A DNA stretch of 64,000 nucleotides from Macrostomum lignano (GCA_002269645.1 NIVC01001802.1:12088-76087); one strand, 5' to 3'. Shown: positions 7,993 to 53,441, counted from the first letter of the stretch. A program made the numbers and translations. The notes: generated by a model not told the origin, from the sequence alone.

Positions 7993-10228
7993 ATGAGTTC
8001 CGCAGCCCAAGTGGCAGTGGCTGCACTGCTTCTAATTTTCTGCTCGCTGGTAGCTGCTCAGCTTCCTCAGAGAGCTTCAACTGCCTCATCCAAGCCGCGC
8101 TTTGTGACCCAGCTCAACGTGAGCGGCTGTCCGCTGGTTGTATACGACTCGGGAGAGCATGCACTGGAGATCGAGCCTATCATGTGCGTCACTGGTGCCA
8201 TCGAAAAGCAGCCTTTGAAACTCGATCTGATTTCGCAGATTTTGTACATCCGAGTCCCCATGCTTCTATGGGATGCCGACATGCTTGCCCAAGCTGGGCT
8301 GCAGCTGCGAAACGTTTCTCTAAAGCCCGTTCGCTTCGCTACTGTCACTAATATAGGAGCTGTGGCAACCAAGTCTAGCGTTATTGGGTTCGAGTGGAGT
8401 TCAAATCACTCGGCTGGTGTTCTGAAAATAGGAATAAATAACACAGAAGCGGCTCTGATGATGATGACGTGAGTGTATTTAGAGTCCTTTTTGGTAGAAA
8501 AATATTTTAGGCAATTTTTGACAAAACCAATATTAAACTAATCAATTTCTAGACGAGAAACGTCGCCTACCGACGCCTTAGACCAGGTGCAACTCAAGGT
8601 CACCATTTTATCAAATCGCAAATTTCGACAAGTCACTCTGCGCCCAGTGGCGCGAAACCGCGGATTCACGGAACTGTCTCTCTTAAGTGCCAGATACGAA
8701 TTGGAAACTTGCTCAGACATTAAATTTGTACTTTTAATGCACCACAGAAACCGTCAAGTTCGAGTATTTCAGCGACTCGATTCTAGGGGTGCCTATTATA
8801 TTGAGCCTCTACTCTGGAGCGTCGATAAGTCAACATACGGACCAGTTGAATATGACTACGGCAGAAACATGCACTACCTGAAGCTGGATCTCGTGCTGCA
8901 AGATGAGGCCACACTCGATGCCGTGAGGACACAGCTGGCCGAATTGTCGCCTCGCTCAGTCGAGTTTATGCGGCTGTGGGCTGTTGAGAGATCGGTGAGC
9001 TCTTTGTTGAGCTCTCGGTTCGAGGTCGGTCCGCTGATGGTGTCGGCAGACTGGAAGTTCGCTCAGCTGCGGCTGTACTGCAGGAGTATAAAACAGTGCA
9101 CCAATCTGAAGTAATTATTGCCTCTATAGTATTATGTCCGGATTTTTTAGTATTTTAAAACAAAAAACCATAAAACTACAACACATTTTAGGTCCAATGT
9201 AATGACAAAAGATCCATTTGCTTTTTGGTATCATATCAATTGGCATCCAACGTCAATTGTTAATTCGGATTGCCTCTTCAAGTCGGACTCGACCGTCTCC
9301 TCTGGGAAGACGGAAAGCTCCACCGACGCCATCAGTTGCAGCCGCTCCGCAAGCTGCGCCTATCTTCGCAGTCTTGCTCGGAGTGGAGACCTGAGTTTTG
9401 GCAAGCTAAAAAGGCTCGCAGATGGCAGATGGTTTTTCATTATACAGCAGAGAGTCTCGGCCGAGGAAAGTTTTCGGCGCACTCTGGCGTCGTACATCCG
9501 CGGATTCGGGAATGAAAACAACTTCTGGATCGGTACGATGTCTCAACATTAAAAAGTTTTTCTTTATTGTTTCTGTATGATAAAATCTGAGTTGCTTTTG
9601 AGAATCTTTTGTCAGACTTATCTTGGCTTAGCCGCGGCAAGAGTCCCAGGGGCTACCAGTGTAAAAATGAAACTACACGCGAAATTCAGCGTTCAAATAT
9701 TGTCAGTGCTTTCAATTCTTCTAAATACTATTAAACATTTCAAATCGCACCAGCCCATAAAAAGCAAATCAAATATTAACAAACGTGAATTCGCCCTTCA
9801 TTGACATTGCAGGTCTGAACAGAATTGCCTCGCTTACCGACGGCGGCGCCACCCTTCGAGTGGAGATGAAGCTGTGGAACGGCACCGAGTGGTACGCGGA
9901 GTACTCGAACTTTACAGTTGAAGGCGTCGGCTCCATGTATCGGATGACGTACCGTGAGATGCTGAGGGACAAGTCTAACGCCAAACACGATGCAATGCAG
10001 TACCACAAAGGCATGCAGTTTTCTACCATCAATGTGGACAATGACAGAGACCGTAGGAAGTCCTGCTCCAATGCATATGGCGGAGGTGGCTGGTGGTTCA
10101 ATAGCTGCTACCATTTCAATCCAAATGGGCTGTTCCCGACCAGCCCGACAATAAACCTGAAGTACATGCTGTGGCACTCTGACAGATGGATGTCCATTCG
10201 GCTTGTGCGGCTGATGGTGCAGTTATGA
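7993..10228 (+). CDS. Secreted FReD family paralogue A: signal peptide, duplicated unassigned module and fibrinogen C-terminal domain, 596 aa
   Basis: Exons 7993..8468, 8553..9110, 9192..9532, 9813..10228 total 1791 nt with GT-AG junctions (phases 2, 2, 1). Signal-like MSSAAQVAVAALLLIFCSLVAA. FReD motifs IIQQRVS, SFRRTLASYIRGFG, NFWIGL, LRVEM, HKGMQFST, DNDRD, GGGGWWFNSC, NPNG. Confidence 0.85.
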
Positions 10229-11299: not shown

Positions 11300-13355
11300 A
11301 TGAAAATGTCACTCAAAAATGCAGCACTGTCACTGCTGTACTTCTATATGGGAATCAGCGGCCAGGTCTCCCAGTGCGCTCCCGCTGCCTCTTCTCTACG
11401 GCTCCGCTTCGTGGCGCAGCTCAACGTGAACGGCTGCGCGCTGTTCGTGCACGACACGGGAGCGAGCGACGGTCCGCACTTGGCAGTCGAGCCGCTCATG
11501 TGCGTGATGCGAAGCTTAAAGTCTCTGAGTCCGAAAGTGGACCTAATCACGCAGCAGATGTACGTGAGCATTCCTGTGTTGATGACGGATGATGGGATGC
11601 TGGCAGAAGCTCAGCGTCAGCTGCAACATCTATCACCAAAGTCTGTGACCTTTGCGGCTGTGTCAGAAGTCAATGCTTCCACAGATGCTAACTCCACTGT
11701 TCGTTCTATTGCTTTTATCTGGAGTCCACATGAGTCCGTTGGAGATCTAAGAATCGAAACAGATATGGACAGAAGTGCATATGAGCTCTCGTAAGTTTTG
11801 AAAAATTGGGTTGGCTCATATTTACAAATCATTATAGTGAAGATTCGAACAAACCTGAACCATCCTGCTCAGATCAGAACTGCAGCTATCATCGGTCGAA
11901 TCCCTTCAGCGAATTCGCTTATCGGCGAAGCTTTTTCTCAACGGAACCTACCAGACCTACCAGTACCGAGTATCGACTCAAAATCACAGCTTCTTTGACC
12001 CCAGTGAGTACAGATTAAGGTACAGTCCCCTGCCTTCATGTCGACAACTGAGATTCATTCGTTCCATCAGTCTGGAGAACTGCTCTGTTCGAGTGCACCA
12101 GAGACTCGACATCAAGGGCCACTTCCTTATCGAGCCTCTGCTGTGCCACAACATCTCCAGCTTGAGCAGCGAGTCAATCAGATATGACTTCAGCCGCGGC
12201 AAATATTATCTCAAGCTGAACCTTTTAGTGCAGGATGAAGCATCACTTCAGACTGTGAGAACTAAACTGGCTGATTTTTCGCCTCTCTCAGTGGAGTTCA
12301 TGCGGCTGTGGACTGCTGAGAGATCGGTGAGCTCTTCGTTGAGTGCCCGGTTCGAGGTCGGTCCGCTAATGGTGTCGGCAAACTGGAGGTCCGCTCAGCT
12401 GCGGCTGTACTGCTCGTCCTTAAACCAGTGTGGCGCTGCCAGGTTGGCGCTGCAGTTAAATGCAATTTTTTAGTCCATATTGAATGACAGGAAAATTGCC
12501 TCTTGTTTTAGATTTTCTGCTCTGTCGGAGCCTGTTGACTTGTGGCGACATCTAAAATGGCGGACATCCTCTCTGGTGGCGAATCAGTGCTTATTGATGT
12601 CCCATAAGCATCTTTCGTCTTGGAGAATGAAAACGATTGGCAGTTCGCCTTCCTGCTCAACCTACAACTCCTGCCGCAATATTCCCAGCCTATTGCGATC
12701 CAAAATTGTTTCCTTCGAGACGTTTCGCAGTTTACCTGACGGCAGATGGTTCGTGACCATCCAGCAGAGGGTGAGTGGAAGCGTCAGCTTCCAGCGAACG
12801 TGGGCGGAATACGAGACTGGCTTTGGCCACGACACCGACTTTTGGATTGGTTCGTTTTTTGTTATTTTAGTAAATGTATCCATCCTGAAATTGTATAAGG
12901 CCTAAGCTGTAGTTCCAGTAGCTTTTGTTGCAATTTCAGGTCTATCTGCGATTAGTCTGCTAAGCACAGGTGGCGTCACCCTCAGAGTGGAAATGAGGCT
13001 GTGGAACGGCTCTGAGTTGCATGCGGAGTACGCGGGATTCCAGGTGGGCGACGCCAGCTCCAGGTACCGGATGACGTACCGAGAGATGCTGCCGGAGAGG
13101 TGCACCGTCAGCTGGGACGCCATGGAGCACAACAATCGGTCCCGGTTTTCCACCATGGACACAGACAACGACAGGCGCAGTGAGTCGTGCTCCGACGGCT
13201 ACGGCAAAGGTGGCTGGTGGTTCAACAACTGCATGCACTTCAACCCAAACGGGATTTTTTCCACCCGTGAGACTTCGGACGATGCGTACATGTCTTGGTT
13301 TTCGCGTCGCCGGTGGCTGGCACTTCGCCAAGTACGACTGCTGCTCCAGATTTGA
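11300..13355 (+). CDS. Secreted FReD family paralogue B, 604 aa
   Basis: Exons 11300..11790, 11873..12442, 12512..12849, 12940..13355 total 1815 nt with the same intron phases as paralogue A. FReD motifs [47 protein letters not shown]. The exon 3 acceptor could alternatively be at 12491. Confidence 0.85.
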
Positions 13356-14597: not shown

Positions 14598-17500
14598 ATG
14601 GAGCAACTAAATTTGCTTTTCAAAACTTTGCTGGCTCTGCTGCTCTGCTCGCTGGCAGCCGGCCAGGTCTCCCAGTGCGCTCCCGCTGACTCTCCGCGGC
14701 TCCGCTTCGTGGCGCAGCTCAGCGTGAACGGCTGCGCGCTGTTCGTGCACGACACGGGAGCGAGCGACGGTCCGCACTTGGCAGTCGAGCCGCTCATGTG
14801 CGTGACGGACAGCCTGAGAGGCATTGTTCCCCGATTCGACTTCATCACCCAGCAGATGTACTTCAGCGTTCCTGTATTGATGCGGGACGCTGGGATGCTC
14901 GCAGAGGCTCAGCGTCAACTGCGGCATCTTTCACCGAGGTCTGTGAGCTTCGCCACGGTGACCAACATCAGCGTCTCAGCCGACACCCGCTCATCGGTTC
15001 GGGCTTTGGGCGTCCTGTGGACTCCGGATGAGCCAGTCGCCACTCTCAGATTGAAAAACATCAGCTCGGAGGACAATTCAAGTCGAGTTCCAAAGACATG
15101 GTTAATTAAAAACATTCTTCCAATGCAATGCGTGTACAGTCAGAAGAACAGTGATGGCCTTAGAAATTCACCCCGAGAAGCTCTTGAAAAAGTGAAGCTA
15201 ACAGCTTCAATCATTGCAAACGGCTCCTGCCACGATGTTCAGAGTCGCCTCCGGCTGCAGAATGACATCCTCCTCGACTCAGAGATAAACGCACAAAGAT
15301 TCTCACCCCTGATGACATGCCGACAGCTGAAATTCAGCCGCACCGTCAATCTCGAGAACTGCTCTGCCCGAGTGCACCAGAGACTCGACATGAAGGGCCA
15401 CTTCCTCATCGAGCCTCTGCTGTGCCACAACATCTCCAGCTTGAGCAGCGAGTCAGTCAGGTATGACTACAGCCGAGACATGCACTACCTGAAGCTGGAT
15501 CTGGTACTGCAAGATGAGGCCACACGCGATGATGTGAGGACTCAGTTGGCCGACTTGTCGCCTCTCTCGGTCGATTTCATGCGGCTGTGGACTGCTGAGA
15601 GATCGGTGAGCTCTTCGTTGAGTGCTCGGTTCGAGGTCGGTCCGCTGATGGTGTCGGCAGACTGGAAATCAGCTCAGCTGCGGCTGCTCTGCACTACATC
15701 ATTGCAGTGCCGAGAACTCAGGTTTGATGATATTATGACATTGAAATGAAGAAATTTGAAATTTGAAATTTCGGTTTCGGTTTTTGCGAATGCGTTATTA
15801 GTATATAATTTCTGAGCGCTCTTTAGCAGCAGTTTACTATTCTGCCTGCTCGCATGACATAAAAATACTGTCGTCATTTTGCACAAAATGTGTGATTATT
15901 TTATTCGATGACGCAGTGAACGCTCCTAAAGTTTGCAAGTTTATCAAGCATCCAAAATTCAAATTGGTCCTTTCAGCTTCTGAATTAGTTATGCTATCGA
16001 AAAACATCAAGTGAGTCCTTCAGTTTAGGGAGTCGTATTCTTCTGTAATACGTTTTTTATGAGCTAGGAGTGTAGTCACCCAACAGTTTCCATCACAAGA
16101 TCAATAGCAAGAAGTTGGAAGCATATGCAATAAGTCCTGTACAACCAAAACAGTATTGGAGGTGCTGCTGCTAACGCTGCAGGCAACTATCCAACACCAC
16201 TGAGACAGGTGGGAATTCACTGTTTCATCAACTTCTAGCAGCTGGCTGATTCTGTCCCACAGTTTCTTATGCTTTGGATTATATTCACACAAAGGATCGC
16301 CCTCTTACGCAAGGCATTTATGACATTGCAAGACTTTTGCCATTTTAGCTCTTTGATTTTCCATAATGCTCATATGTCTTTTGACCATTTCTTACGTCGA
16401 TTCAAAGTTTTATTAGCAAAATATTGTTCAACTTCAGGTCTGTGCTTCTTTTGGAACCTGTTGATATCTGGCGACACGTGCAGTGGCGCGTGACATCGCT
16501 GGTTGCTGAGCAGTGCCTCTTCGAGTCCAGCCGAATCACTTCATCATGGAGAATGAAACCACTTGGGAGTGCAGCCAGCTGCTCCAGCCTCAGTTCCCGG
16601 GCCGAGCTGTGCACAGCCGACTTTGCTAAGCGAGTTAAGCGAGACGGTCGTTGTTTCACAATAATTCAGCAGCGACTCACCGATAAAGTGAGTTTTCAGC
16701 GAAACTGGACTGAGTACGAGACTGGCTTCGGTGACGATATTGACTTCTGGATCGGTGAGTGGTGTCGGGCCAGTTGTTTAGCGTGAGTCGAAAAACTTTA
16801 AGCAAAGCCTTGCGAAAAATTTTAGAAGTTCTTATTATGTCAGTAGGTCGCGTGTTAGACGAGACCGATGGTCAGTTATAGGAGACCGAAGAGATTTCTG
16901 AATTTGTGACCGTCCGCAGTATTCAATTTTCATTTGGTCCTTTGGTGGACGAATTGATAGATAGATGAGTAAGTGAATGAATGGATGAATGAGTTGATCA
17001 GTAGCGCAAACAGAAATTTTTTGAGGGTGGGATTCTGGAGGGTAAAGTCCCCGGGGGGGGGGCGGAGGGGTGGCTCTGTTTTTTGCGAAAATTCGCTTGG
17101 TCCCCCCTTCGATTTTTTTGGGTCTCCGCCTAAAGGGCCCCCCTGGTTGCGCCCCTGGAGTTGATGAATTGATTGGTGGATAGGTGGGTCCAGGGTCCAG
17201 GGTGGACGCATGGTATAGATATGTGAGTATACTGTTGAAAGAGTCACGAGAGAGAACTAGGGGAGGGTGCTCAACGGATCAAGTAGCTAGTCAATCTCTT
17301 CACTGCTAAGTGAATCGCTTAGAAAGTGGGGAACTCCCAGCACACAGCTACATGTATTGTCTTGTATTTCGAGTATGTCGGATGCTTAGGGGGGCCGTAG
17401 CCCAGCGGTAGCGCAGCTGCTCTGGTGTGCCAGCGACCCAGGCTCGATTCCAAGTGCAGTCACATTAATTTGGGGCTGAATTGGAATCTCGGCTTGGCTC

Positions 17501-18249
17501 TGCTCGTGCAATTAACGGCCTTGAGAGCCAACCCCCCAAGGCGCAGTGAAGTGTACATGCCTAACGATAATATAAAGTTAGGGCCGCTGTACACTCCTGT
17601 GTGAGTGTGTGCCTGCGTACGTATCCGCGCGCTTGTGTGCCTGCTCAGGGGAGTCGGCGGAATGGGCAGTAATGCCTCTCGCCGGTTGTGTGCCTATGTC
17701 GCCTAAAGTGCGCCAGGGTGCACACAACCCCCCTGCCTCTAATAAAAAAAAATGTCGGATGCTTTTCGGGCCGCCACATCACCAACTAATACAACTGCAG
17801 GCCTGCAGAAGATCCACAGTCTGAGTGGCGCAACGCCGCGCCTGTTTCGAATGGAAGCTCGCAACCATCAGAACGGCAAGCTGTACGTGTGCGAGTACTC
17901 TCACTTCTCGGTTGGCAGCGCCAGCACGCGGTACAGGCTGAGTGTCAGCGGTTACCTGCCCGGCAGCTCCAACACCTCTAAGGACGCATTCTCCTACAAC
18001 AACAATCTGACCTTCTCAACAATGGACTCGGGGTCGAATTCTCGCTGCTCAAGACAGAATAGTAACGCTGGATGGTGGTACGACAGCTGCACCTACGTCA
18101 ATCCAAACGGCTACTTTAACTTGTCGGAGATCGGCAGCAGATGGAACAGTTCGAGAAATATGCAGTGGCTTTACGCAGCTGACTATGTGGGGGGATTCAC
18201 GATCAGACCAATGCTGAGAAGTATTCGTCTAATGTTGGAAATTAGCTGA
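14598..18249 (+). CDS. Secreted FReD family paralogue C, 629 aa
   Basis: Exons 14598..15721, 16438..16754, 17801..18249 total 1890 nt with GT-AG junctions. Signal-like MEQLNLLFKTLLALLLCSLAAG. FReD motifs IIQQR, SFQRNWTEYETGFG, DFWIGLQKIH, FSTMD, AGWWYDSC, NPNG. Confidence 0.8.
16999..17157. mobile_element. Short hAT-type MITE in intron 2 of paralogue C
   Basis: Imperfect TIR cagtagcgcaaacag / ctggttgcgcccctg and a perfect 8-bp TSD gagttgat (16991-16998, 17158-17165). Confidence 0.75.
17389..17752 (+). mobile_element. tRNA-derived SINE, family B, copy 1
   Basis: A box tagcccagcggtag, B box ggctcgattcc, aataaa plus an A tail, and a ~13-bp TSD atgtcggatgctt. A close copy lies on the minus strand at 23674-24034. 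Confidence 0.85.
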
Positions 18250-19669: not shown

Positions 19670-21401
19670 TCAGTTCCCCGCGGCAGTGTGCCAGCTCTGA
19701 AAGCAAGGAGCTGCGCAAAGTCCAGGCTCTCCAGGGCAAGCATCGCACACGTAGACAGTTCGCTTGACCGAGCCGTTTCCATAGCAGAATCTGCACCGCT
19801 TAGTCGGTCTCATATTGGCCTCTGTCGGTGGTAGTTTGGATGGGGTTTGCAGCGAGGCAGCTCGACGCTTCGATGTGTTCTGTCGCTTGCCCCGACCCGT
19901 CTGCTCCATCAGAAGGCGGATCGTAGCCTCCAAGAAGTCTAAGAACTTGATGCAGTTGCCAGAATGGCAGTAACAAATCCAAGCATTGCGGACCAACTGA
20001 AGCAAAATATGAAACCCGAGCTTCTGGTGCCACCTGTGCGTCCTTCTTCCTGCACTGTAGGGTTGTAGCGCTGCGTCAAGGCGATCGGCGCCTCCCATAC
20101 TCTTGTTGTACTGCAGCAATGAGTTGGGCTTCAAAACTGTCTCCACTACGCCGCCTCGAATTACTCGCCTCACCTCCGTGCTTCCAGCGACGCCGTGGGT
20201 GTCCAAAAGGTAAACAGTTTTGCGACCACTGCCTTTCTGTCAACGAGCTTGACGGCAACAACATCGCCTCGGCGCATGTGAGAGTGACTTATGGGTTGCA
20301 GTGCCAGCACCTTTAGCTCGTTGGGGATGCCTCGGTCGACTCTCACGGTTCCTGTCAGCATGGTATTACGTTCGAGCAGAAACTGAGCTAGGCGAAGCGA
20401 CGTGAACCAGCTGTCACAGTAGATCCGGTAGCCCAAGCCCAGCAAGTCCTTGCTTAGCTCGACAACAATCTTTTCACTGAAAGATAAATTCCCGCAGTTC
20501 ACTCCTTCTCCAAACCTGTCGTTGTCCTGCTTCACAGCATGCACACGGAAGTTCCACAGAAATCCGGTGGAAGCCTCTGTGAGACAGTAGACCTTTATGC
20601 CGAACCTGGCGCGCTTGTTGGGCATGAACTGTCGGAAAATGAGTCTGCCTTAGTACATGACCAACTCTTCATCTACTGAAACGTCCTGATTCGGGCAGTA
20701 GTTGGCTTGGCAAATACCACGCGCAATGTCTAAAAATGGCCTGATTTTCTTCAGGGAATCCTGGTGATTATTTACTGCGGTGCAGTCGTAGAATCGGAGG
20801 AATGACAAGAGCTGAATGAACCGATCCCTTCCGAGGCAATGCTCTTTTTGAAAATATTCACCACCGTAGAAATCGCCAGTCGACCAATACATGTGCAATT
20901 CGGGCTTCTTCACTAGACCCATGTACAGGACAATGGCGAGACATTTCCTCACTTCGTTGTCGGTGCATTGTCTCCAAGATGATAGTAAGGGGGAAGAGGT
21001 CCATCAGCCTCAGTTGCAATGTTTTGGAGCTCGAAATCAGCTCGAGCATTGGTCCAAAATCGAATGGCAGACACCAGATCAGAGGTAATAAAGTGCTGGA
21101 GGAAGAATTTGATCCGAGCCATTGTGTTTTCCGGCGCTTGGGCTAATAGATCCGGGTTCAGAACGGGCACTCCGAGGAATTCTGGCGCATCCCGGAGACG
21201 CGAGTCTTCACCCTCCTGAACGAAATTCCATCCATTTTCAATCAAAGCTTCTTCTACCTGAGAGCCTTCCACGTCACTCTGGCCATCTTCTTCATCCACC
21301 TCGCCATCAATGCTTGCGTACTCGCTGGCGCTGTTATCACTGGTCAAAGCCGGTGAGTCGTCAAGAAAGTCAACGGCATCCTCATGAAAATTGCTAGCCA
21401 T
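19670..21401 (-). pseudogene. Decayed piggyBac transposase
   Basis: Acidic N-terminus, WRQCTDNEVRKCLAIVLYMGLV, catalytic motifs VSVDEEL / YCDSWFTS / YNKSMGGADRLD, MPNKRARFGIK, and a C-terminal Cys-rich domain (CRFC...CDAC...LC...CF..WH). Disabled by frameshifts near 20990 and 20210 and an in-frame TAA at 20650-20652. Confidence 0.9.
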
Positions 21402-22280: not shown

Positions 22281-25200
22281 TCAATGCTGTGGGAAGATCT
22301 CACGGATTAGGGGCAGCACCTGGGGCCGCTCCTTGGTTACCTGAAGGCACGCGTCAATACCCTGTCTCTGACGCTCAGTCAGCGGGTCACTGTGGTACAC
22401 CGTCACCCACGGGCTGCCTGCAGTAAGGAAATTGTTCATTGAGTTTGGTCATAAAGGGAAGTGCAAGACGTGCAGAATTACCATCTTGATTGTTAAAGTA
22501 AATTTATTTATTTACGATTTTCGATTTACGATTTAGAAATTTAACGATTCTAAAGGTACATTTATTGTTGTGAAAGTACATTCTAGAATGTAAAAGTACA
22601 TTATCGATTGTGAAAGTACATTATCGATTGTGAAAGTACATTCTCGATTGTGAAAAAAGTACAGTCTCGATTGTGAAAGTATATTCTCGATTGCGAAAGT
22701 ACATTCTCGATTGTGAAAGTACATTCTCGATTGTGAAAGTACATTCTCGATTGTGAAAGTACATTCTCGATTGTGAAAAAAGTACAGTCTCGATTGTGAA
22801 AGTATATTCTCGATTGCGAAAGTACATTCTCGATTGTGAAAGTACATTCTCGATTGTGAAAGTACATTCTCGATTTCAAAATTTACTCGCACTTCCCGAA
22901 GTATTTTTTTTAAAAATTAGAAAAATTCTTCGTAAATTGATTCAGCGGCTTTAATGAAATTGATTTTTACCTACACTGACTCGGTCTAAAATTTGGAAGC
23001 TTCCTACTACAGTTTAGCTCAGACAAAAACGTACCCTGTTTAACAGCGTCACCCTTGACAACCAGCAGCTCGAGTCCGGTTGAATGATCCAGCTTGCCAC
23101 CGAGACGCTCCGGCCTGCTGAGCTGATGGCAGATCTTGGCCAGAGACAGGGCGTCAATGTCCGACACGAAACCTGCAATCAAAGGGCATTCGTAGCATGT
23201 AGCATTTATCCTAGCATGTGGTTATGAGGCAGAGTGCCTCAGCGGTAAACGCGTCTTACTCCTGAATCACGACGACTCACAGTCATGGCCTCCCATGCCG
23301 CTGTTCACCCTGTGTGAGCGTGTGCCGTCATAAGGCATGAATGCTTTTGCCTCTTCGAGTTCTGAATGTTGTTTCATTTGTGGTATCAAGTTATTTTGCC
23401 TTTAAAGTCCACCTTGTGAACACCAATAACTCTTGTAGTAGGCTTCATTCGAAAGCAATCCTACGAACTATATGTAGGGCCTCCTGGGGTGAACTTAGTA
23501 AACAATGTCTTTGGTGATTAAAATTCATTTGAAGGAGCCTTGAGCGTGCATGAGCATGAAGTGACTCGTTTTAGCATCAAGAGTGTAGCCAGGATCTATC
23601 ACTGGGGAGGGGAAAGGCGCCATTATAAATTTGAGGTGGCGCTACACCTTTTGGCGACATCGTCCCGCAACGATTTTTTTTTATTAGAGGCAGGGGGGTT
23701 GTGTGCACCCTGGCGCACTTTAGGCGACATTGTCACACAACCGGCGAGAGGCATTACTGCCCATTCCGCCGACTCCCCTGAGCAGGCATGCAAGCGCGCG
23801 GATACGTTACGCAGACACACACTCACACAGGAGTGTACAGCGGCCCTAACTTTATCAATTGTTAGGCATGTACACTTCACTGCGCCTTGGGGGGTGGCTC
23901 TCAAGGCCGTTAATTGCACAAGCGAGCCAAGCCGAAATCCCAATTCAGCCCCAAATTAATGTGGCTGCACTTGGAATCGAGCCTGGGTCGCGGCACACCA
24001 GAGCAGCTGCGCTACCGCTGGGCTACGGCCCCCCTCCCGCAACGATTAGGTCATGACAATTCTGTCCATTCCGCCACCCCATGAGCACATAATGTACAAA
24101 GGCACGCGTTCATACACACGCTCACTAAGGGTGTACATCGGCTCTGACTTTCTAATCATCAGGCATGTTTTGTAGACTCTCTGCGCCTTGGGGCCGGCCT
24201 TCGTGACTGTGAAACCGCACAACAACCTCCAGGCCAATGATGGTCCAAAAGTCCTTAAGTTGTACTTTTACTATATATTTTACGGTTATCCTGATCACCA
24301 ACCTGTTGATGAACTACTCAAGGCGCAGCTGGATCACTCTTGACAAATTGCTAAACTTAGTGACTTAGCGGATTTGAGCTCCCCTGAGTACAATGCACTC
24401 ACCGGAAGCGGGACTGCTCAGCTGAGTAACAGACAGCGGCTCCCGGCCCATCCGGCTCAGGTACTCCTGCACGCTGAACTGGCCCGGCTCGCACAGATTG
24501 TCGGCCAGCGCCTCGGAGACGCCCTGGTTCACCAGGATGCGCCGCATCGCCTTCAGCGCCGAGCCGTCGCTCCAAGAGTTGCGCACCGCCGCAGCGCCGG
24601 CCTCGTCCGTTGCGACTTTGCCGGTCAGGCGCAGCAGGCAGCCGCTTTGGCGCGCCACCAGCTCGCGCAGGCCGGCCGAGGCCGCGTCGCCTCCATTCAG
24701 CACCTGCAGAGCTTCGGCCACCTCGACGGCGTTGCCGATGCAGCGGGCGAGCGGCCGCTCCATCTCGGTGATGAACACTATCACTTTCATGCCGTAGCCG
24801 CGTCCGGTTCGCTCCTTGGGCGGTTGGATGAGAGAGTTATTTCAGTGTAAAACAGTTCATGCTCACAAGTGAACTGCCAAAGGGTAGGAAGTCTGTCCAC
24901 TGACAATTTTTTTGCGCCGTCACGGATGTCGAACGATCGTATTGTTAAAAAGATTTGAGGTTAACTTTTTGGCAAGCATATTAGTTGCCATCAGTCGTTC
25001 AGGCTGCAAATGGACGAGAACTTCAACAGACTCAAAATCGTTGCTCAAAGGCACACCTTTTGGGAGGAATCGTTGACGACCTTGTGCAGCCTTACTAATG
25101 AGAGACAAAATCCGCAGTGCAATTATTGTACGTGTTCCACCCAAACTACATGTAACGATTGACGCAAATATGATCTCACAATGGACTCGGCCAGGATCTG

Positions 25201-26175
25201 AGCCTCCTCAAAAGTGGTCATGAAGGCGGCGCGGCCGAACTTCACGTCCATCACCAGGGCGGAGATGCCCTCGGCGGCCTTCTTGCTCAGGATTGAGCTG
25301 GTGATGAGCGGCACGGACCGGATGGTGGCGGTCTCCGACCTGGCCGCGTACAGCACGCGGTCGGCGGGCACCATCGCCTCGGTCTGGCCGGCGATGAAGC
25401 CACCAACGTCCGACATGACGGCGCCGCGCATCTGCTCGGCTGTCAGGCTGGCGTTGAAGCCGGGAATCGACTCCATCTTGTCGATGGTGCCACCAGTATG
25501 GCCGAGCGACCGGCCGGAGATCATCGGCAGCTTGAGGCCGAGGGCGGTCAGTGATGCCACCATCGGTGGGCTGACCATGTCGCCGACGCCTCCGGTGCTG
25601 TGCTTGTCCACCACCTGCCGGGGGCATTCAAATTGGCAGGTAGCGTGTTAGCGGAGTAAAAATAATGTAACTCTATAGTCATAATTCATGTCCATTCAAA
25701 ATCACCGGAACGGAACCCCTAAGTTTAAAAGAAATATTTTAATTTTATATCAATTTTACAATCGTCCTATCGTTTTGTTTTACAAGCGTATTTCGCATTT
25801 GGTGAACAAGAATGAATATGAGGAGTACATGTAGCTACCATAAATAACAGAAAGCGCAATTGAGCTTTTGGACTGCAGTGATTTTCATACACTCGAGTAG
25901 TTCAGGGTCAGAACATCAGACAGAAAACGCACCAATGGTCTCAGGCTGTCAGGCCAGGACAGAGTCTCCCCCGAAGCAGTCATGGCCGAGGTGAGTTGAA
26001 CAATCTCCTCCGCGTCCATGCCTTTGGTGAAGATGAGCATGAGCACTGCTCCGATTTGCTGTCCGGAGAGCCGGCCTGAGCTCACCAGCCGCACAAGCAG
26101 CTTCACGTCCTCTTCACTCCATCGCTCTCCGCTCAGCTTCTTCTCAAGCAGTTCGCTGAAATCCAACAATAGCAT
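22281..26175 (-). CDS. TYMP: Thymidine phosphorylase, ~454 aa
   Basis: Exons complement(25933..26175, 25180..25614, 24403..24814, 23035..23172, 22281..22417) total 1365 nt with consistent phases. Signature motifs [70 protein letters not shown]. Confidence 0.95.
22545..22875. repeat. ~20-bp minisatellite (ctcgattgtgaaagtacatt)
   Basis: Tandem array inside the last TYMP intron. Confidence 0.9.
23674..24034 (-). mobile_element. tRNA-derived SINE, family B, copy 2
   Basis: Reverse complement of 17389-17752 at high identity, with a 13-bp TSD tcccgcaacgatt (23663-23675, 24035-24047). It lies in TYMP intron 3. Confidence 0.85.
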
Positions 26176-27548: not shown

Positions 27549-28574
27549 AAAAGTAAGTCTTCGATCGCCCCACCCTCTCTCACTAAGGATTCAACTGTTT
27601 ACTCCTAGGCTCCAATGACTTAGAAAATGCAATAGAACCAGCGTACAGCCCCGACTAAAATGAAATGTTTATGCTGCTGTTGAACTGCTATCTGTAACAT
27701 TACTAGCCAGGATCTGTCTGAATAATGCCAAATCGAAAAGATTAGTATAAAATTTACAGTTTTACTTGTCATTTATCGTACCAAATGTATATATTGCTTG
27801 TTTAGCTAACAGATAAAATTTACTAGTAGCTTGTAAGCCTACACCAAAACGAACCAGTGACAGGTTTATCTTAACCTTTGCACTCGTACAAACTGGTCTG
27901 ATTAAAACCGAAGTACCTAGTAAGCACGGTTGAGCTTACAAAGACAAAGTTCCCTATTATTGAACATTGTGCATAATAGGAAACTCTATAGTCCCAGATA
28001 TGAGCTAGCAATGAGACCATTTTAAAGTACATTTTGAAACTAAATTGAAAGTTTAACAATAGCCATTTGCAATTCAGGTGGAAAGTCAAATTCAGATTTA
28101 AAAGTACAAACAATACCACACAAGGAGCGAGATTTATTTGAAAATTGAAACACAATTTTACAAGCAACTATTTATAGTCAATTTGGCAAATATTGAAGCA
28201 AAACACAAGCAGACAGATAGATATAGCGAGTAGCGGTGCCAAATATAACGAAGCAGAAAAAAAACAGCGCCAGGTAATTGAAGCTAACGACTTATTCAAC
28301 AATTAACTAGATTCTTTATAATTGCTAAAACATTTAACTGATACAGGTATAAATAATATTAACATTGTACAGTGAGATTAGGGACTATTCAAACAAACTG
28401 CAAATGTTCAATTGATTCATTGTGCTCAAGTGCGCATAGGTGAGATTTTGTTTGTCAAAGCAACATTGCAGAATGAATTAAATTAAATATTGTCATGTAC
28501 TTTACTTAGCCTTTACCCCTTGCCTATCCTTCTTGTGCTTTGCTAGCGGAAAATCTCAGTAAGTATTCACCGTT

Positions 28575-29425
28575 GCCATAGACAGCACTCTCCACATTCT
28601 CCCACTGCCATAGACAGCACTCTCCATATTCTCCCACTGCCATAGACAGCACTCTCCACATTCTCCCACTGCCATAGACAGCACTCTCCACATTCTCCCA
28701 CTGCCATAGACAGCACTCTCTACATTCTCCCACTGCCATAGACAGCACTCTCCATATTCTCCCACTGCCATAGACAGCACTCTCCACATTCTCCCACTGC
28801 CATAGACAGCACTCCATATTCTCCCACTGCCATAGACAGCACTCTCCATATTCTCCCACTGCCATAGACAGCACTCTCTACATTCTCCCACTGCCATAGA
28901 CAGCACTCTCCACATTCTCCCACTGCCATAGACAGCACTCTCCACATTCTCCCACTGCCATAGACAGCACTCTCCATAATTCTCCCACTGCCATAGACAG
29001 CACTCTCCACATTCTCCCGTTGCCATAGACAGCACTCTCTACATTCTCCCACTGCCATAGACAGCACTCTCCATATTCTCCCGCTGCCATAGACAGCACT
29101 CTCCACATTCTCCCGTTGCCATAGACAGCACTCTCTACATTCTCCCACTGCCATAGACAGCACTTTCCATAATTCTCCCACTGCCATAGACAGCACTCTC
29201 CACATTCTCCCACTGCCATAGACAGCACTCTCCATATTCTCCCACTGCCATAGACAGCACTCTCCATATTCTCCCGCTGCCATAGACAGCACTCTCCACA
29301 TTCTCCCACTGCCATAGACAGCACTCTCCATAATTCTCCCACTGCCATAGACAGCACTTTCCATATTCTCCCACTGCCATAGACAGCACTCTCCATAATT
29401 CTCCCACTGCCATAGACAGCACTCT
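28575..29425. repeat. 32-bp minisatellite (gccatagacagcactctccacattctcccact)
   Basis: About 26 tandem units with small variants. It generates the spurious repetitive ORFs at 28524-29457. Confidence 0.95.
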
Positions 29426-29904
29426 TGATAATTGTGTTTATAACTGCTTGTTTCCATCTCTATTTAAACCTATCAGGGACTTCTCCGCAAAAAAATTTGC
29501 AAGCCCTTAAACAGCTATTTGTGTTCTCGGTCGGACTTTCTTTATGCTCTTAAATCGACCCCAGAAGGCACCATTAAGCACGGAGGGTTAACAGAGTGAA
29601 TAAATACAGAATTTCAAATCCATAAAACTAATACCAATGCGGACTTGGCATGATTAAGCAGAATTGACTGCTTTTGTACCGTACATTCGTTGCAGCTTCA
29701 ATAGGGCAATCAAAATTCAAAATGTTGTAATACAAACAATAAATATGCAAATACAGCGAAACATTCCACTAAACTGAATTCAACTTAGTTTTGTACAGTA
29801 TTAAGGCGTTGCATTAATTTATCTGGACAATGTAGCTTTTATAAAGTAAGTCCTCCGACTAAAACTACCTGTTTAACCGGACAGGTAGGTCAACTGACAA
29901 GTAA

Positions 29905-30572
29905 ATGACACCTGACAAGTACATAATGACACCTGACAAGTACATAATGACACCTGACAGGTACATAATGACACCTGACAAGTACATAATGACACCTGAC
30001 AAGTACATAATGACACCTGACAAGTACATAATGACACCTGACAAGTACATAATGACACCTGACAAGTACACAATGACACCTGACAAGTACATAATGACAC
30101 CTGACAAGTACATAATGACACCTGACAAGTACATAATGACACCTGACAAGTACATAATGACACCTGACAAGTACATAATGACACCTGACAAGTACATAAT
30201 GACACCTGACAAGTACATAATGACACCTGACAAGTACATAATGACACCTGACAAGTACATAATGACACCTGACAAGTACATAATGACACCTGACAAGTAC
30301 ATAATGACACCTGACAAGTACATAATGACACCTGACAGGTACATAATGACACCTGAAAAGTACATAATGACACCTGACAGGACGACAGGTACATAATGAC
30401 ACCTGACAGGACGACAGGTACATAATGACACCTGACAAGTACATAATGACACCTGACAAGTATAAAATTACACTCGACAAGTACATAATGACACCTGACA
30501 AGTATAAAATTACACTCGACAAGTACATAATGACACTTGACAAGTACATCATGACACCTGACAAGTACATTA
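29905..30572. repeat. 21-bp minisatellite (atgacacctgacaagtacata)
   Basis: About 30 near-identical tandem units. Confidence 0.95.
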
Positions 30573-30720
30573 TGAAACACTTATTGACAGACTCATTACT
30601 ATTAATAGGAACCTGTCAAACCACACAGTCAAACACCAAGCTATTACAATGAAGCAAAACAAAAATGCTAACTATCATATATCATATCTTTACAACAGTT
30701 GCCACAGGCTGCCAGTCAAC

Positions 30721-33700: not shown

Positions 33701-34840
33701 TAAAAATGGAAGTATCCTAAAATGCATTAGTTCTGTAGATCGATAGAAAAAAACGCCAACCAAAAGTCACCAACCATTTGGAAACCGAAAAACCTTCAAG
33801 CAGAAGTAGCAGAGCAGCTCGCCGCTGCAGGCGTGGAAGGAGTAGAAATGCTGGATCAGATCAGCGTGGCTGGAGCTGCGGTGGGCGCACAGCTCGCACC
33901 GGTAGGGCATGTCCCTGGGCGGATGTGTGCCAGCCAGGTGGTCGGCCAGCTTCGAGTCCGTGTCGAAGTGCAGCTCGCAGATTCGACACACCAGCGCCGA
34001 TTCGTCCAGGCAGTCGGGGTGGGCGCGGCTGAGGTGCCGCTGCATGCGGGCGGGGGTTTGGAAGCTGCGCAGGCAGCGGTGACATCGCGTGTGCGCGGTG
34101 AGGTTGGCGCGGTGAATCCTGGCGCTGAGCAGGTGCTCAAGAATGTGCTTGGCGGCCGCATCGCTGCAAGGCATCTGGGCGGAGCAGACGCAGCAGTTGT
34201 AGGCAAACGGACCAGCGGCAGGTGGGGTGACCACAGTCTCCAGCGGGTCCAGCTCTCGGCAGTAGAAATACTCTGTGTAGTCAATGTAGTTGTTCTCATT
34301 CTCGATCACCGAGTCGTAGGTTGCGGCTGGAGGCAGCGGCTTCGTAGCTGCCGGGGCTGGCGGCGGGTAGGAGTGGCTGACCCGGCCGTTGGTTAGGAGG
34401 GCCTGCTTGACAATCGGAGACAACTGCTGTTGCTGCTGCGTCTGTTGCTGCGGCTGCTTCTGCACTCCAGACGGCGAGCCGCCCAGCCGCAGGGCGGAGC
34501 TGACGCACAGGCCGCCTGTGGACTTTCGTCCTCGCGGCGTCTCCTTGAATCGGCGCGATCTCGCTGCCGCCGCTGCTGCCGCTGTGCCAGCGCCGCCGCC
34601 TGTCACGGTGCAGTTGAGCGGCACGAAGCCGCCAAGCTTGACGCTTTGCAGACTGCCGGCATAGTTCTGCTGATGAGGCTGCTGAGGAGGCTGTGGCTGC
34701 TGAGGCATGGCAACTGCTGACCTGGCTTTCATTGCTCCAATTGAAGCCGTGACGAGAGCTCTTTGTTTTTGCCGCCGCCGCTCCTGCTGCTGCTGCTGTT
34801 CATCATCGTCTGAGTCAATCACAATGATGGACTCGTTCAT
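30721..34840 (-). CDS. ZNF280/POGZ-type multi-zinc-finger protein, ~689 aa
   Basis: Exons complement(33775..34840, 32640..33023, 31885..32116, 30721..31108) total 2070 nt with consistent phases. The finger series CHRCLRSFQTP, CRICELHF, H..RDMPYRCELCAHRSS, LLCYFCLKVF, CPKCKLHFL, CLEC, HLCPACRYVTCC, YCLCGF matches the order I recall for ZNF280/POGZ. The true start may be further upstream, and the last exon is less certain. Confidence 0.8.
31190..31825. repeat. Degenerate ~21-bp minisatellite (ttattgtgtctataggggtat)
   Basis: Fills intron 3 of the zinc-finger gene. Confidence 0.9.
32281..32553 (-). mobile_element. tRNA-derived CORE-type SINE, family A, copy 2
   Basis: Homologous to 94-380 (acagctcagccgcagctattgc, ttttacagctgggtgaactgaagcaatg, gttaagtgtcttg). 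It lies in intron 2 of the zinc-finger gene. Confidence 0.8.
33045..33657. repeat. 30-bp minisatellite (gataaatatcccaactgaatactactgtgg)
   Basis: About 20 tandem units filling intron 1 of the zinc-finger gene. Confidence 0.95.
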
Positions 34841-34996
34841 CAGTTGAGACGGCAGGAATTGTGGAAAAAATGAAATTAGAGAAATAAAGCCGATATGTAT
34901 CGAAAAATACATAACTGCGGGAATACAGCCAATACTGTATATATCAATAAGTATGAAACCAGAGAAATAAAGCCGATATGTATCGAAAATATGAAA

Positions 34997-35420
34997 ATAA
35001 GCCAAGGATTATTGCACTTGATAAGCCAAGGATTATTGCACTTGATAAGCCAAGGATTATTGCACTTGATAAGCCAAGGATTATTGCACTTGATGAGCCA
35101 AGGATTATTGCACTTGATAAGCCAAGGATTATTGCACTTGATAAGCCAAGGATTATTGCACTTGATAAACCAAGGATTACTGCGCTTGATAAGCCATGGA
35201 TTACTGCGCTTGATAAGCCATGGATTATTGCACTTGATAAGCCAAGGATTATTGCACTTGATAAGCCAAAGACTATTGCACTTGATAAACCAAGGATTAC
35301 TGCGCTTGATAAACCAAGGCTTACTGCCTTTGATAAACTAAAAATTATTGCACTTGTTAAGCCAAGGGCTATTGCACTTGATAAACCAAGGAATATTGCA
35401 CTAGATTAGAAAGGATTATT
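34997..35420. repeat. 24-bp minisatellite (gataagccaaggattattgcactt)
   Basis: About 17 units, decaying rightwards, just upstream of the zinc-finger ATG. Confidence 0.9.
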
Positions 35421-38700: not shown

Positions 38701-40226
38701 CGCCAGGCGCTGCTTTGCACAGATGAGAAGAGTCATCGGGCCTACTTGGGGTCTTTCTCCCAAGACGGTCAGATGGATTTACACCGGCATCGTTCGGCCC
38801 AATATCACCTACACGTGTGTTATCTGGTCCAGTGCGTTGGAGTTGAAGACTGTGTGGGACCAGTTGTACCAGCTGCAGGGTAACATCTGCCGAGCCATCA
38901 CCGGTACATATCTATCCACCCCTTACGAGGGGCTCAACACCATCCTCAGCATGCCTCTGCTGCATTTGTTCATTAGAGCCGAGGCGATGAAGGGCGCCAC
39001 GTGTCTCATCTGTGATAAATTTATTGCTAACACGCCCTTGGGCTTCATGCCCGAGAAGACTCTTTTCCCACATCTGGACTATATCCGTTGCGATCTTCAA
39101 TGCATCCACCTCAATTTAGACAAGGTAGACTGCAAATCCCCCACTCTCATTCTCAGGAGGGGCTTCAAGTGTACTCTTCCACCGAGAGGGAGTCACCCGC
39201 TGGATGTGGGCATCAACCAGAGAAGCTAGGGTATTCACTGCTTCACTGATGGATCCCTGTGTGACAGTCTCGCTGGTACGGGCATTGCCATTTTCTACAA
39301 GGGTGAAGCATTCTTACAAGAGAGTCTTCATCTTGGTGAGAATGTCTCGGTTTTTCAATCCGAAGTTGTAGCTATCAACCAGTGCACTGAGCATTTGCAC
39401 AAAGCTGGCATCAGCAGCTTTGACATTTATTTTTACTCTAACAGCTAGGCTGCTATTAAGGCCTTGTCTTCTATCAAGCTCTCAACCAAGTCAGTCTCAG
39501 ACTGCCTCAAAAGCTTGCAGACCCTAGCGATTCTCAACAGGATCAATGTTATCTGGACACTAGGCCATAGCAACATCCTCGGCAACGAGCTTGTGGATCA
39601 GCTTGCCAAGTGGGGTTGCACCCCCGATGGAGCGCAACGCTCAGTCAAGTTACCTTCTCCGAAGTCATCAATCAACCGTGCAATTCAAGATTGGCTGAAC
39701 CGCCAGCATCAGACTCACTGGGATAGCTGCTCCAAATACTGGCAAGCACGAAAAGCTATGCCTGCTATTAACCGGAAAGTATCCGAATATCTAATCTCCA
39801 TAAGTAAAACTGACTTGAGGGAGATGTGCATGTTAATTACTGGCCATGGCTTCTTCCAGAGACATACTTCACTGCAAAGTGGCTGCTCCCCTATCTGCCC
39901 ATTCTGTGATTTAGAGGAGGAAACCTCGACACACCACGTCACTTTCTGCCCGCACTTCAACAAGGCGCAGAGGCGTCACCTTGGTCACCCGCTAAGGCTT
40001 GACGAGCTCACCACTCTGGACCGGATCCATGACCTATGTGCATTCATTCAGGATTCTGGGCAGATGAAGATTGCAGACGCCACTCTCGCAAGCTCTTCTG
40101 CTGCCGGCGAGGGGTGGGCGCAGCCCCAAGGCTAATGCCTTTTTGTCTCTGTTTAGCTTGGGGTTGCGATAGGGGCCTCGCGGCCTATTCGCGGTGCTCT
40201 GCCCCCCGTTGGTAATAAGTAGTAAG
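38701..40226 (+). mobile_element. 5'-truncated non-LTR retrotransposon (LOA/R1-like) with RT thumb, RNase H and a C-terminal Cys/His motif
   Basis: One reading frame with two TAG stops: [18 protein letters not shown]...ITG...TP, then [41 protein letters not shown]...CPFC...ET..H...C. A 14-bp TSD tatgaggtacattg (38687-38700, 40227-40240) and a taa/tag-type tail bound the element. Confidence 0.9.
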
Positions 40227-42738: not shown

Positions 42739-45700
42739 ATGTCGGATGATGAGGTGAGATCCTGGGCTTTTTTATAGAACTTCAAGAGAACATTTATGTG
42801 ACTTCTAATAGTAATAATAATAACATAATTGCAATTGCATCTGATCTACATGAGTAGCCATAGCCCCCCCCCCCTACTTGATTCGATTTCAACCTACTTC
42901 GGCGAAAGTCAATAACGGCGAAAAATACTTTCGCAATGACCATTTTGTCTAAAGGACTAAAGCTTACTATTTATGCGAAAGATTTGTTCCAAGCTTTGGA
43001 ACAAATCTTTTGTTGTTGTTTTGTTGTTTTTGAGTTTTGTTGTTTTAGAAGAAAGTTAAAAAGTAAACCAAAAAAAACTTTGGTAGTTCTTATTGTTATG
43101 GTGACTGTATAAATAGCAAGACTGTTATTTTTACGGTTAACACTTAAAACAAATACCATCTAAATGAAGTGACAAACTTACTGTGCAAATACTATGATGG
43201 TTAAATTTAAAAAATAAAGAAATGTTTTATTAATTAATACAATAGTAACTTCTAGAATCTAGTGGCTCTTGTCATGGTAGCTTACTTTAGGTAATTGTTG
43301 ACTATTACCTTGTAAAATAGAAATTTCTTCCACAAGACCGTAAAAATAGCCATTTTGCTTCCTAGTTCCTATTTATGGTGACCATAAAAGTAATGGTTCT
43401 GCTATTTATATGGTTACATTAGGTAAAGAACATAGGGCTGCATAGTGTCTTATGCATTAACCGTATAAGTAACCATTTTGTTATTTCTACAGTCACCGTA
43501 ACAATAACAACTGCCAAAAACTTTATAAAGATATATTTTATTGTGAAATTTTTTGTTTTATTGCAGTTTAATTCAGTTGTTTTTTAGTAGGTGCCATTCT
43601 ATTATAATAGGATTTCAAAGTACTATTTTAGGAACTGAAAAACCACATCATTATTTGTATACTTTAATTTATCAATTGCATAAGCCTATCAATAGATTAC
43701 ATGTACATAACATAGCTATTAGCAATGCCATGAGTTTTTTAATTTTCTAACTGCAAATAATCTGCAGCAATGAATAATTTCATAAAGCTTCAATCACCAA
43801 AGGGGTATATTTCCAATAATATAGCCAATCTTTTTGTCAAACTGGTCACTTTCTTTCACAAAAAATGTCTATCTATTTAAACTAAAAATTCATTTTTGCC
43901 AAAGCATTTTTTGCCAAAAATTCCTTTTCCAAAATGGGCTGCACTTTTTGCTTCTATGGGGTACTGACTATACTAACACTAATATTGACAGAGCTATAGT
44001 GACATTGATTTGAAATTTTGGCTGTTGTCCTTCCTTACAAATTATATTTAATCATTAAGAAGGTGAGCGCTATCATTTTTTATGCGACATGTTTTGCCTC
44101 GCATCATATAAAATCGCATAAACCAATCCTAAATAAGCAACTTGCCAATCACAGTGCCAGTGCCCTCCTTAGAGTATTCTAGGTGTACACTTATGCTCAT
44201 CTCACTCTATCTCTCTCTCTCTCTCTCTCCCCTCATTGCAACTCTGTGAGCACTCTGTCGGACTGTACAATCTACTGTTAATTTATATACATTTCTGACT
44301 TTTATCAACCTGTTCTTAGTCTTAATTGTTAAATATTAATGAACTAATAAATCGTTACTAATTTTAAGAGCCTGACGATGCCTGACGCGAGGCAAAACAT
44401 GTCGCATAAAAAATGATAGCGCTCACCTTCTTAATTCTACTTTTTCTTAGACGTGCAACTTTACCACATATTTATTCAATAGTCTAGATCATGCTGGGTG
44501 CACACCTGAACAAAAATTGAATGCCCTTAATAATAGAGGTCGGACGAGCAGAAAATTTTGGTCGGGCATGAAATTTCGTGAAATTTTAAAAGTTGGGCGT
44601 GATCGTGAATTTATATTTGCATGCACATATTTTGAGCTCATAAGTTACAAGTGTTGAAAATAACAAATCAAGAAAAGAAATAATTTTAAATTGATAATAG
44701 CTACTCGGTAATGCTGTCAAGTCAACAAATTTAAAATTTATCACTTTTACACATTTGTCTTCAAATATTTTGGTAAACCAAGTAGAAAAGTTATACTTCT
44801 AATAAAATGTAATAAAGCAGAAATTCATGACTGTCGTGAACGGGTTTCAAGGAAATAACGATCGTTAAAAAAATGGTCGTGAATTCACGAAATCGTGATC
44901 ACAATCGTGATCATGTTCGACCCCTACTTAATAAGGGATTAAACTGTGTCTGGAAAAGTGATGCACCCAAAAATTATCATGTTTTTTACAAATTAAAGGT
45001 TCTGATCTTCAACAAAAGTGCACAAAGTTTACATTTGTTTTTCAAAAATATAAAAAAAGTTGTACAAAGAGAACTGCTATTTTCAGTTTTTACCTTTGTC
45101 TTATATAAATGAAATATCTCAAAATGTCGATTAAATCTCATGTTATATTGTTGTCATATTGTAGTAAAAATCTCAAAAATTCTATATTGTATAACCCTTT
45201 GTTATAGTCAACAAGAATATTGATAGTTTTTAAAAGCATATGTGACTGCAATAAAAGTTTGTATGATTTATAATATAGGCAACATATTAAAATGAGCAAC
45301 AATTGTGTAGGAAGAAACCTGCATCTTTGTATTAGATTAAGTATGTTTGTTTATAAAATTTTTAATGTCCATCATGACATGGCTTAAACTGGTATTTGAA
45401 AAAGCTTAGTCTAGTTTTAGTGTATTAACAATAGCAGCAACAGTCCTATTTGGATAGTAGACTTAGCATCTCAACTTCCCTAAAGACAAAAAACATTTAA
45501 TAGAGTTCAAAGTAGCCTCCATAAAAGTGCAAACATTTGACCAAAAATTGGTTTCCCTGACACAGCTGAACCAATTTTCATAGACCCTTGTACCATATTC
45601 CCAAAATTTGAGTTCAACTTGCTGACAGCGCTGCCCCATCCCACTCACCTGTTTCCCCCACCCCAGTGGACCCCCGGCAGCAGGCCGAAGGCGAAACCAG

Positions 45701-53266: not shown

Positions 53267-53323
<57 letters not shown>

Positions 53324-53372: not shown

Positions 53373-53441
<69 letters not shown>

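Follow-up and report, generated by a model that had tools for sequence, protein, structure and literature searches.

A tandemly duplicated alpha/beta unit without described relatives in secreted fibrinogen-related proteins of Macrostomum lignano

A 64,000-nucleotide stretch of the Macrostomum lignano genome (GCA_002269645.1 NIVC01001802.1:12088-76087), referred to below as the window and numbered from its first nucleotide, encodes four paralogous proteins (A to D) in which two copies of a previously undescribed domain precede a C-terminal fibrinogen-related domain (FReD). Neither a described family nor a solved structure corresponds to the repeated unit. It is a real, duplicated and independently folding module that the wider family uses once, twice or six times, joined to either of two unrelated carbohydrate-recognition heads, a FReD or a C-type lectin domain. 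The observations are best explained, with a probability of about 0.6, by secreted modular lectins in which two alpha/beta units would act as a scaffold presenting a FReD recognition head. The structural and evolutionary part of this explanation is highly probable; the scaffold and recognition role, argued by analogy with known lectins, is tentative and put at somewhat below even odds.

The duplicated unit and its lectin head

All four genes lie on the + strand and start at 7993 (A), 11300 (B), 14598 (C) and 60291 (D), and open reading frames (ORFs) and tblastn searches agree in this with the initial annotation of the window. Every protein begins with a hydrophobic N-terminal leader, for example 'LLALLLCSLAAG|QVSQC', which forms a helix at residues 4–20 in a full-length structure model. 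The leader is followed by about 350 amino acids (aa) and then by exons matching the Pfam family PF00147 (Fibrinogen_C). This architecture had been proposed from the DNA, and it was confirmed by the absence of any Pfam match in the 350-aa module together with the PF00147 matches on the C-terminal exons. The first exon of C, used as a protein query, retrieved only M. lignano proteins, labelled 'Fibrinogen C-terminal domain-containing' or 'hypothetical'.

The N-terminal module is a tandem duplication, far beyond what chance would produce. In a single BLASTP comparison, the two halves of the C module are 29% identical over 124 aa (E=6e-10), and this alignment contains all of the residue pairings that the initial annotation had listed for C. 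Comparison of unit-1 and unit-2 profiles, each built from nine proteins, gave an hhalign probability of 98.7% (E=1.8e-16, 163 columns). The repeat period, first estimated at about 190 aa, is indeed ~185–190 aa in A and B but ~208 aa in C and D. The true unit is also longer than the 124-aa core and includes the next 60–70 aa, the stretch between the two halves being mostly the C-terminal third of unit 1; an alignment of all copies in the wider family (29 units) gives a conserved unit of ~190–200 aa. In paralogue A, the region 8090–9400 covers the N-terminal module, which is broken by introns at 8469–8552 and 9111–9191. Unit 1 of A spans 8059–8691 (+; residues ~23–205, with the first intron inside) and unit 2 spans 8692–9312 (+; residues ~206–385, with the second intron inside). 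These limits were set by hmmsearch with the repeat profile and by the elements of the full-length model, which run from strand 36–43 to strand 182–188 in unit 1 and from strand 215–222 to strand 372–375, in the same order, in unit 2.

Conserved in the unit are an N-terminal Cys, the segments 'LRF....V.GC...VH', 'hhhEPhhC' (nearly invariant) and 'FDY....Y..L.V.L.D', and a helix. These are followed by 'L.P.SV.FM.L', 'A.LRL.C.....C..L', two helices ('P...F.R') and a strand, with another Cys at the end. About six cysteines are conserved in total, the Glu-Pro within 'hhhEPhhC' is nearly invariant, and the turn 'LRhxC-x5-C' precedes two helices and two strands. In unit 1 of the subfamily holding B, C and D, the C-x5-C pair has been lost, and a hypervariable insert is found at that point in C and D.

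PF00147 matched the window exons with E-values of 2e-7 to 6.5e-23 (scores of 31.4, 69.0 and 82.1 bits, with the cut-off at 22) and reached up to 121 bits in relatives; the matches in C lie at 16424–16783 and 17752–18246. The FReD of A occupies two exons within 9313–10228 (+), and the last exon of the database protein P0018 is 100% identical to the window by tblastn. A phmmer search of the Protein Data Bank (PDB) with the C-terminal 204 aa of P0018 found the fibrinogen alphaE C domain (E=4e-22), ficolin-3 (E=3.6e-20), ANGPTL2 (E=1e-19), tenascin-R (E=6e-19), FIBCD1 (E=3e-13) and tachylectin-5A (E=1.3e-12). The segments 'FSTINVDNDRD...SCSNAYGGGGWWFNSC' of A and 'FSTMDRDNDV...SCSNECGRGGWWFKDC' of D align to the matching residues of fibrinogen and ficolin, and the calcium motif 'FST.D.DND' and the cysteine pair 'C...GGWW..C', which are those of FReDs that bind sugars and acetyl groups, are kept. 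Two FReD hallmarks are present in A and D, the 'D-x-D-x-D' loop that binds calcium and the disulfide of the P-domain close to the ligand pocket; C is an exception, reading 'FSTMDSGSNS'.

Sequence and structure searches with the unit

Pfam-A searches with each protein and with each of the 29 units found no confident family, and no weak family recurred across the units. Isolated matches to DUF2213, Rpb2_4 and CbiX were below the gathering threshold (E>0.008), occurred in one member each and were attributed to chance. Nothing significant was found among PDB sequences with one unit sequence and two profiles as queries; the matches to Tc toxin A, RH5, LENG8 and a coronavirus nsp3 fragment were rejected, as their E-values were at least 0.45. 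Pfam scans, sequences and models contained no collagen, immunoglobulin superfamily (IgSF) or coiled-coil N-terminus, in agreement with the initial annotation. In the literature, these genes or this domain were not described in any paper found, and papers naming both Macrostomum lignano and fibrinogen do not deal with these genes.

The fold of the unit was predicted with AlphaFold2 from unit 2 of D (P0005 residues 231–429) on the basis of the 29-unit alignment. The model has a mean predicted local distance difference test score (pLDDT) of 91.1 and a predicted template-modelling score (pTM) of 0.82, with a pLDDT of at least 90 in 159 of the 199 residues. With E for strands and H or h for helices, its elements follow the order E E E E E H E E h E E H H E E. 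The predicted unit is compact and disulfide-rich, with 11 strands and 3–4 helices, and the helices in the unit models are at most 14 residues long. The fold is thus globular and mixed alpha/beta, not simply 'beta-rich' as had been considered possible at the outset. In a full-length model of paralogue A (pLDDT 57 overall), units 1 and 2 mostly reach 65–84 and show the same element order as the single-unit model. Together with the profile–profile probability given above, this indicates that, as far as can be tested, both halves share a fold, as had been supposed.

The unit could in principle be a very divergent version of a known alpha/beta extracellular fold, such as a decorated ferredoxin-like or SEA-like sandwich, that profiles and Foldseek both missed. 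We regard this as possible but unlikely. A Foldseek search of the unit model against 350,542 PDB chains gave no match at E<=1e-3, the best template-modelling (TM) scores being 0.14–0.24, none of the weak Pfam families came up repeatedly across the 29 units, and the PDB profile searches yielded nothing. The claim that the repeat cannot be assigned to a known family is upheld by the Pfam searches per protein and per unit, the PDB sequence searches and Foldseek alike. The top PDB alignments were antibody Fabs, and an Ig-like reading was rejected since their TM of ~0.2 and root mean square deviation of 15–19 Å are not meaningful.

Among predicted viral structures (BFVD), Foldseek returned one match, A0A7S7YF07 of Medusavirus stheno T3, with E=1.8e-4, a probability of 1.00, a TM of 0.53 over 178 columns and an identity of 12–16%. 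The match was reproduced by the independent full-length model of paralogue A (E=2e-4). A0A7S7YF07 is an uncharacterised, unannotated protein of 417 aa in which one unit-sized stretch is aligned, and its structure is itself only predicted. This sole structural neighbour found may reflect either homology or convergence.

Gene structure, divergence and distribution

Gene models were derived from tblastn blocks and exact GT..AG junctions. Paralogue A (7993–10228, +; exons 7993–8468, 8553–9110, 9192–~9534 and ~9812–10228) is an allele or near-copy of P0018/P0019 (Mlig015699), as found by tblastn of P0018. Its two introns in the module are GT..AG and phase 2, with the junctions 'LMMMT|RETSPT' and 'CTNLK|SNVMTK'. 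Paralogue B (11300–13355, +; exons 11300–11790, 11873–12442, 12512–~12851 and ~12937–13355) is a near-copy of P0013 (Mlig006328) by tblastn, with the phase-2 junctions 'AYELS|SELQLS' and 'CGAAR|FSALSE'. Paralogue C (14598–18246, +; exons 14598–15721, 16438–~16756 and ~17800–18246) was modelled from ORFs, the PF00147 matches and the phase-2 splice junction 'CRELR|SVLLLE'. Its first exon encodes the signal peptide, unit 1 (14664–15314) and the core of unit 2 (15315–15721). Paralogue D (60291–63432, +; exons 60291–61411, 61793–~62135 and ~63014–~63432) corresponds to P0005 (BOX15_Mlig019144g2), to which it is 99.7–100% identical by tblastn; unit 1 (60357–60980) and the unit-2 core (60981–61411) lie in its first exon, which ends at the phase-2 junction 'CRDLR|SAVLTE'.

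Six units in the window, namely unit 1 of A and B and unit 2 of all four paralogues, have a phase-2 intron directly after 'C.....C..L(K/R)'. The same position holds a phase-2 intron in units 4, 5 and 6 of a related C-type lectin gene ('RVCRTL|H', 'AACRDL|S' and 'AACEAL|V'); after the first three units of that gene the exon boundaries fall at about the same spot. The repeated exon is a symmetric 2-2 module made up of the tail of one unit and the core of the next. A symmetric exon accounts for tandem amplification, and it is the usual prerequisite of exon shuffling between genes. Its construction from such phase-2 exons means that exon duplication or shuffling multiplied the unit and probably also spread it.

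Substitution rates were estimated between the first exons of C and D by the Nei–Gojobori method. The ratio of nonsynonymous to synonymous rates (dN/dS) is 0.22 in the unit-1 core (synonymous divergence dS 0.27), 0.13 in the unit-1 tail (dS 1.37) and 0.91 in the unit-2 core (dS 0.09; 15315–15721 versus 60981–61411). The DNA of A is 89–90% identical to C and D over 8851–9082, which belongs to the unit-2 core, and ~69% identical elsewhere. This mosaic divergence within one exon indicates purifying selection together with gene conversion over the unit-2 core, and it looks as though conversion homogenises one part of the scaffold across the paralogues. Identity among eight close paralogues is 0.9–1.0 in the unit cores and in the A/B region of the FReD, 0.35–0.59 in the FReD P-domain segment and 0.07–0.28 (mean pairwise) in the unit-1 linker. 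The P-domain segment carries the ligand-binding loops in solved FReDs. The unit is under purifying selection, and close paralogues differ mainly in the region of the FReD binding loops and in a single linker.

The linker is a hypervariable coding segment of unit 1, located at 15054–15170 (+) in C and at ~60745–60860 in D, and the two versions cannot be aligned with each other. Unit 1 of C and D lacks an intron, and the linker occupies the exact site of the phase-2 intron of A and B (8469–8552 and 11791–11872; 82–84 nt). It may have arisen by exonisation of the intron or by replacement of the C-x5-C turn. Exonisation remains speculation, since the C and D linkers show no convincing splice signals of a cryptic intron and no DNA similarity to the A and B introns.

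An exhaustive HMMER search with the core profile against 1.84 billion representative proteins gave 15 proteins at E<=1e-3. All organism-labelled matches among them are from M. lignano except for one Sycon ciliatum protein, and three further matches come from assemblies of the sequencing runs SRR30276812 and SRR31628403 and from the JGI metagenome 3300040801. The sponge match (P0032/P0053, LOC135822563) covers only ~20 profile positions in a low-complexity context and is probably a short-motif coincidence. The sponge protein has five Ser/Thr/Gln-rich repeats of ~50 aa, each with 'HF..EPLMCSTRI', which resembles 'H..VEPLMCVT', the best conserved motif of the unit. With the 29-unit profile as query, a further, word-indexed search yielded nothing new except M. 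lignano fragments. These searches support a lineage-restricted family, as had been suggested from the window alone, every organism-labelled genuine match being from M. lignano. On the metagenome contig (positions 1–1516), two tandem units lie in different reading frames, which indicates that this genomic fragment of a relative has the same split gene structure.

Three architectures were found. One unit and a FReD are present in P0028 (452 aa), and two units and a FReD in the window genes and in P0024, P0025, P0029 and P0030. In P0022, P0034 and P0035 (~1440–1460 aa), six units with a period of ~190–220 aa are followed by a C-type lectin domain (PF00059, Lectin_C). PF00059 scores 45.4 bits in P0022 and 38.1 bits in P0023 (cut-off 22.6), and the match lies at the very C-terminal end, behind the six units. 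P0022 is encoded by a single uninterrupted ORF of 4.4 kb on an assembled contig of 4758 nt (SRR30276812), presumably from another macrostomid. The six-unit architecture is conserved at considerable divergence, because P0022 and P0034 are 49% identical and collinear along the six units and through the lectin domain. In M. lignano, a six-unit C-type lectin gene lies on NIVC01000671.1 (2001–12115) and encodes a protein of ~1440 aa. Named C-type lectin genes of the family are Mlig001890, Mlig001894 and Mlig001546. Mlig-tuf2, a species-specific gut gene containing a C-type lectin domain, was considered as a six-unit relative and rejected, as its transcript Mlig020807 encodes an unrelated protein with an N-terminal CLECT domain and Ig-like domains.

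The window as a whole is eukaryotic, patchy in composition and rich in repeats. Just downstream of the A-B-C cluster, ORFs at 19673–21401 (-) show matches to DDE_Tnp_1_7 and zf-Tnp_2, transposase domains of the piggyBac type, and represent a transposon remnant. Other coding matches between the lectin genes are a glycosyl transferase family 3 domain at 25126–25614 (-; E=8e-28), a weak C2H2 zinc-finger ORF at 33770–35005 (-), a weak RNase H fragment at 39464–40132 (+) and an INO80-like SNF2-family ATPase exon at 45619–46674 (+; E=4e-80) with a weak DBINO match. The 40 kb between C and D (22568–55836) contain long minisatellite arrays with periods of 11–39 bp, for example at 28574–29425, 29904–30575, 48166–49471, 50522–51956 and 53154–54648. 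Some of these arrays have an extreme strand skew (GC skew of -0.65 at 48–50 kb).

Proposed role and comparison with known lectin systems

The proteins are secreted, disulfide-rich and modular, with a reiterated, conserved globular unit bearing a variable lectin head. We propose that the units may form a rigid stalk or scaffold that presents the FReD or C-type lectin head, and they might also mediate self-association or partner binding. The expanded, partly tandem gene family would supply a repertoire of recognition specificities for glycans or acetyl groups, and the most plausible targets would be microbial or other non-self glycans. More speculatively, and in our view doubtfully as a whole, the unit could be a genuinely new extracellular fold that arose in, or was acquired by, the macrostomid lineage. 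It would then be a non-immunoglobulin counterpart of the IgSF modules of FREPs and CREPs, a phase-2-shuffled scaffold homogenised by gene conversion and with diversified binding loops, serving an independent innate recognition repertoire.

Several observations weigh against the modular-lectin explanation. The recognition and scaffold roles are drawn by analogy only. In the last exon of C, the calcium motif is partly gone ('FSTMDSGSNS' versus 'FSTMDRDND' elsewhere); this exon (17752–18246, +) is 31–41% identical to those of the other paralogues, has no blastn match to D and lies behind an intron of ~1 kb, and it may reflect an exon swap, neofunctionalisation or decay. At the FReD N-terminus, about 36–40 positions of the PF00147 profile are unmatched, with alignments starting at position 34–40 of 221, the PDB alignments of the FReD begin ~40–50 residues into the crystallised domains, and the FReD part of the full-length model has a pLDDT below 50. 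With its low overall pLDDT, that model does not allow the packing of the units with the FReD to be read. The model of the unit rests on 29 sequences, and all of the organism-named ones are from M. lignano. Finally, lineage-restricted and fast-diversifying secreted proteins of Macrostomum could equally be compatible with reproductive or adhesive use.

This last point leads to an alternative in which the proteins are secreted lectin-like glycoproteins that serve not non-self recognition but reproduction, in seminal fluid or in the coats of eggs or sperm, or else temporary adhesion or the extracellular matrix. Secretory proteins of reproduction and adhesion, too, typically show lineage restriction, tandem expansion, hypervariability and mosaicism. 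The family shows each of these features: its organism-labelled matches are all from M. lignano apart from the motif-only sponge match, and it combines tandem expansion with hypervariable segments and gene-conversion-like mosaicism. On the other hand, this analysis gave no link of the genes to gonads or adhesive organs, no paper was found for six of the family's gene ids, and a published paper on M. lignano adhesion names fibrinogen merely in passing. Variation is moreover focused on the binding-loop region of the FReD P-domain, as in diversified recognition lectins. We consider a reproductive or adhesive function a serious but improbable explanation.

The initial annotation also raised an effector role for the N-terminal units, in which the lectin head would deliver, for instance, a pore-forming or toxic module; lectin-plus-effector fusions are known in other animals. 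No sequence or structure match to any pore-forming family was seen in Pfam or in Foldseek searches of PDB and viral models, the unit model is compact and disulfide-rich (pTM 0.82), and the six-fold reiteration in the C-type lectin proteins is stalk-like, which together make an effector role very improbable. An annotation artefact (pseudogenes or chance ORFs before FReD exons), to which the fragmentary or chimeric database models (e.g., P0012, P0015 and P0016) and the aberrant last exon of C could point, is effectively refuted by the intact frames in all four paralogues, the canonical phase-conserved introns, the dN/dS of 0.13–0.22 in unit 1, the 4.4-kb ORF on the 4758-nt contig encoding a 49%-identical collinear relative and the confident structure prediction.

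The family offers a clean example of the birth and spread of a lineage-specific domain, and a candidate new fold whose prediction is confident enough to make a structure determination worthwhile. In addition, it may open a way into the poorly understood innate immunity of flatworms, in a species for which RNA interference and transgenesis are routine. Should the unit be a disguised known fold, or the proteins have a reproductive role, only a family annotation would be left.

Innate recognition has repeatedly been solved by modular lectins in which a head that binds sugars is paired with a stalk or oligomerisation module, as in ficolins, collectins, snail FREPs and CREPs. New here is a stalk domain that is described in no database, resembles no solved structure by Foldseek and occurs on two different lectin heads as a shufflable phase-2 exon unit. 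By its N-terminus, which has no IgSF domain, collagen or coiled coil, the window family stands outside the FREP, ficolin and coiled-coil classes. The FReDs of tachylectin-5A, FIBCD1, angiopoietin-like proteins and tenascins are homologous C-terminal domains that share the calcium motif and the cysteine pair with the window FReD, but their N-termini are coiled-coil, Cys-rich, transmembrane or EGF/FN3 and are unlike those of the window family. Coiled-coil FReD proteins such as angiopoietins and fibrinogen chains have a long N-terminal coiled coil, whereas the window units are globular with short helices. Ficolins and collectins resemble the family in placing one type of N-terminal stalk or oligomerisation module before either a FReD or a C-type lectin domain. 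However, the ficolin stalk is collagen Gly-X-Y, and the window proteins, which contain no Gly-X-Y repeats or collagen Pfam match, have a stalk of globular repeats.

The snail systems, in which CREPs and GREPs also have an IgSF architecture, provide the other parallel. Like the window family, snail FREPs are secreted products of diversified multigene families in which one or two tandem N-terminal non-lectin domains precede a C-terminal FReD, and the same type of N-terminal module is also found on a C-type lectin head, in CREPs. The FREP of Biomphalaria glabrata consists of a FReD plus one or two IgSF domains (PMC7588048), and CREPs and GREPs are among the plasma lectins that bind sporocysts (PMC8995041). 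The N-terminus of snail FREPs is IgSF, whereas the window units are not: no Pfam Ig match was found in the proteins or the 29 units, the model contains helices, and the TM to Fabs is ~0.2. Snail FREPs come from a mollusc, while the window family comes from a flatworm and is built on a 190-aa alpha/beta domain without described relatives.

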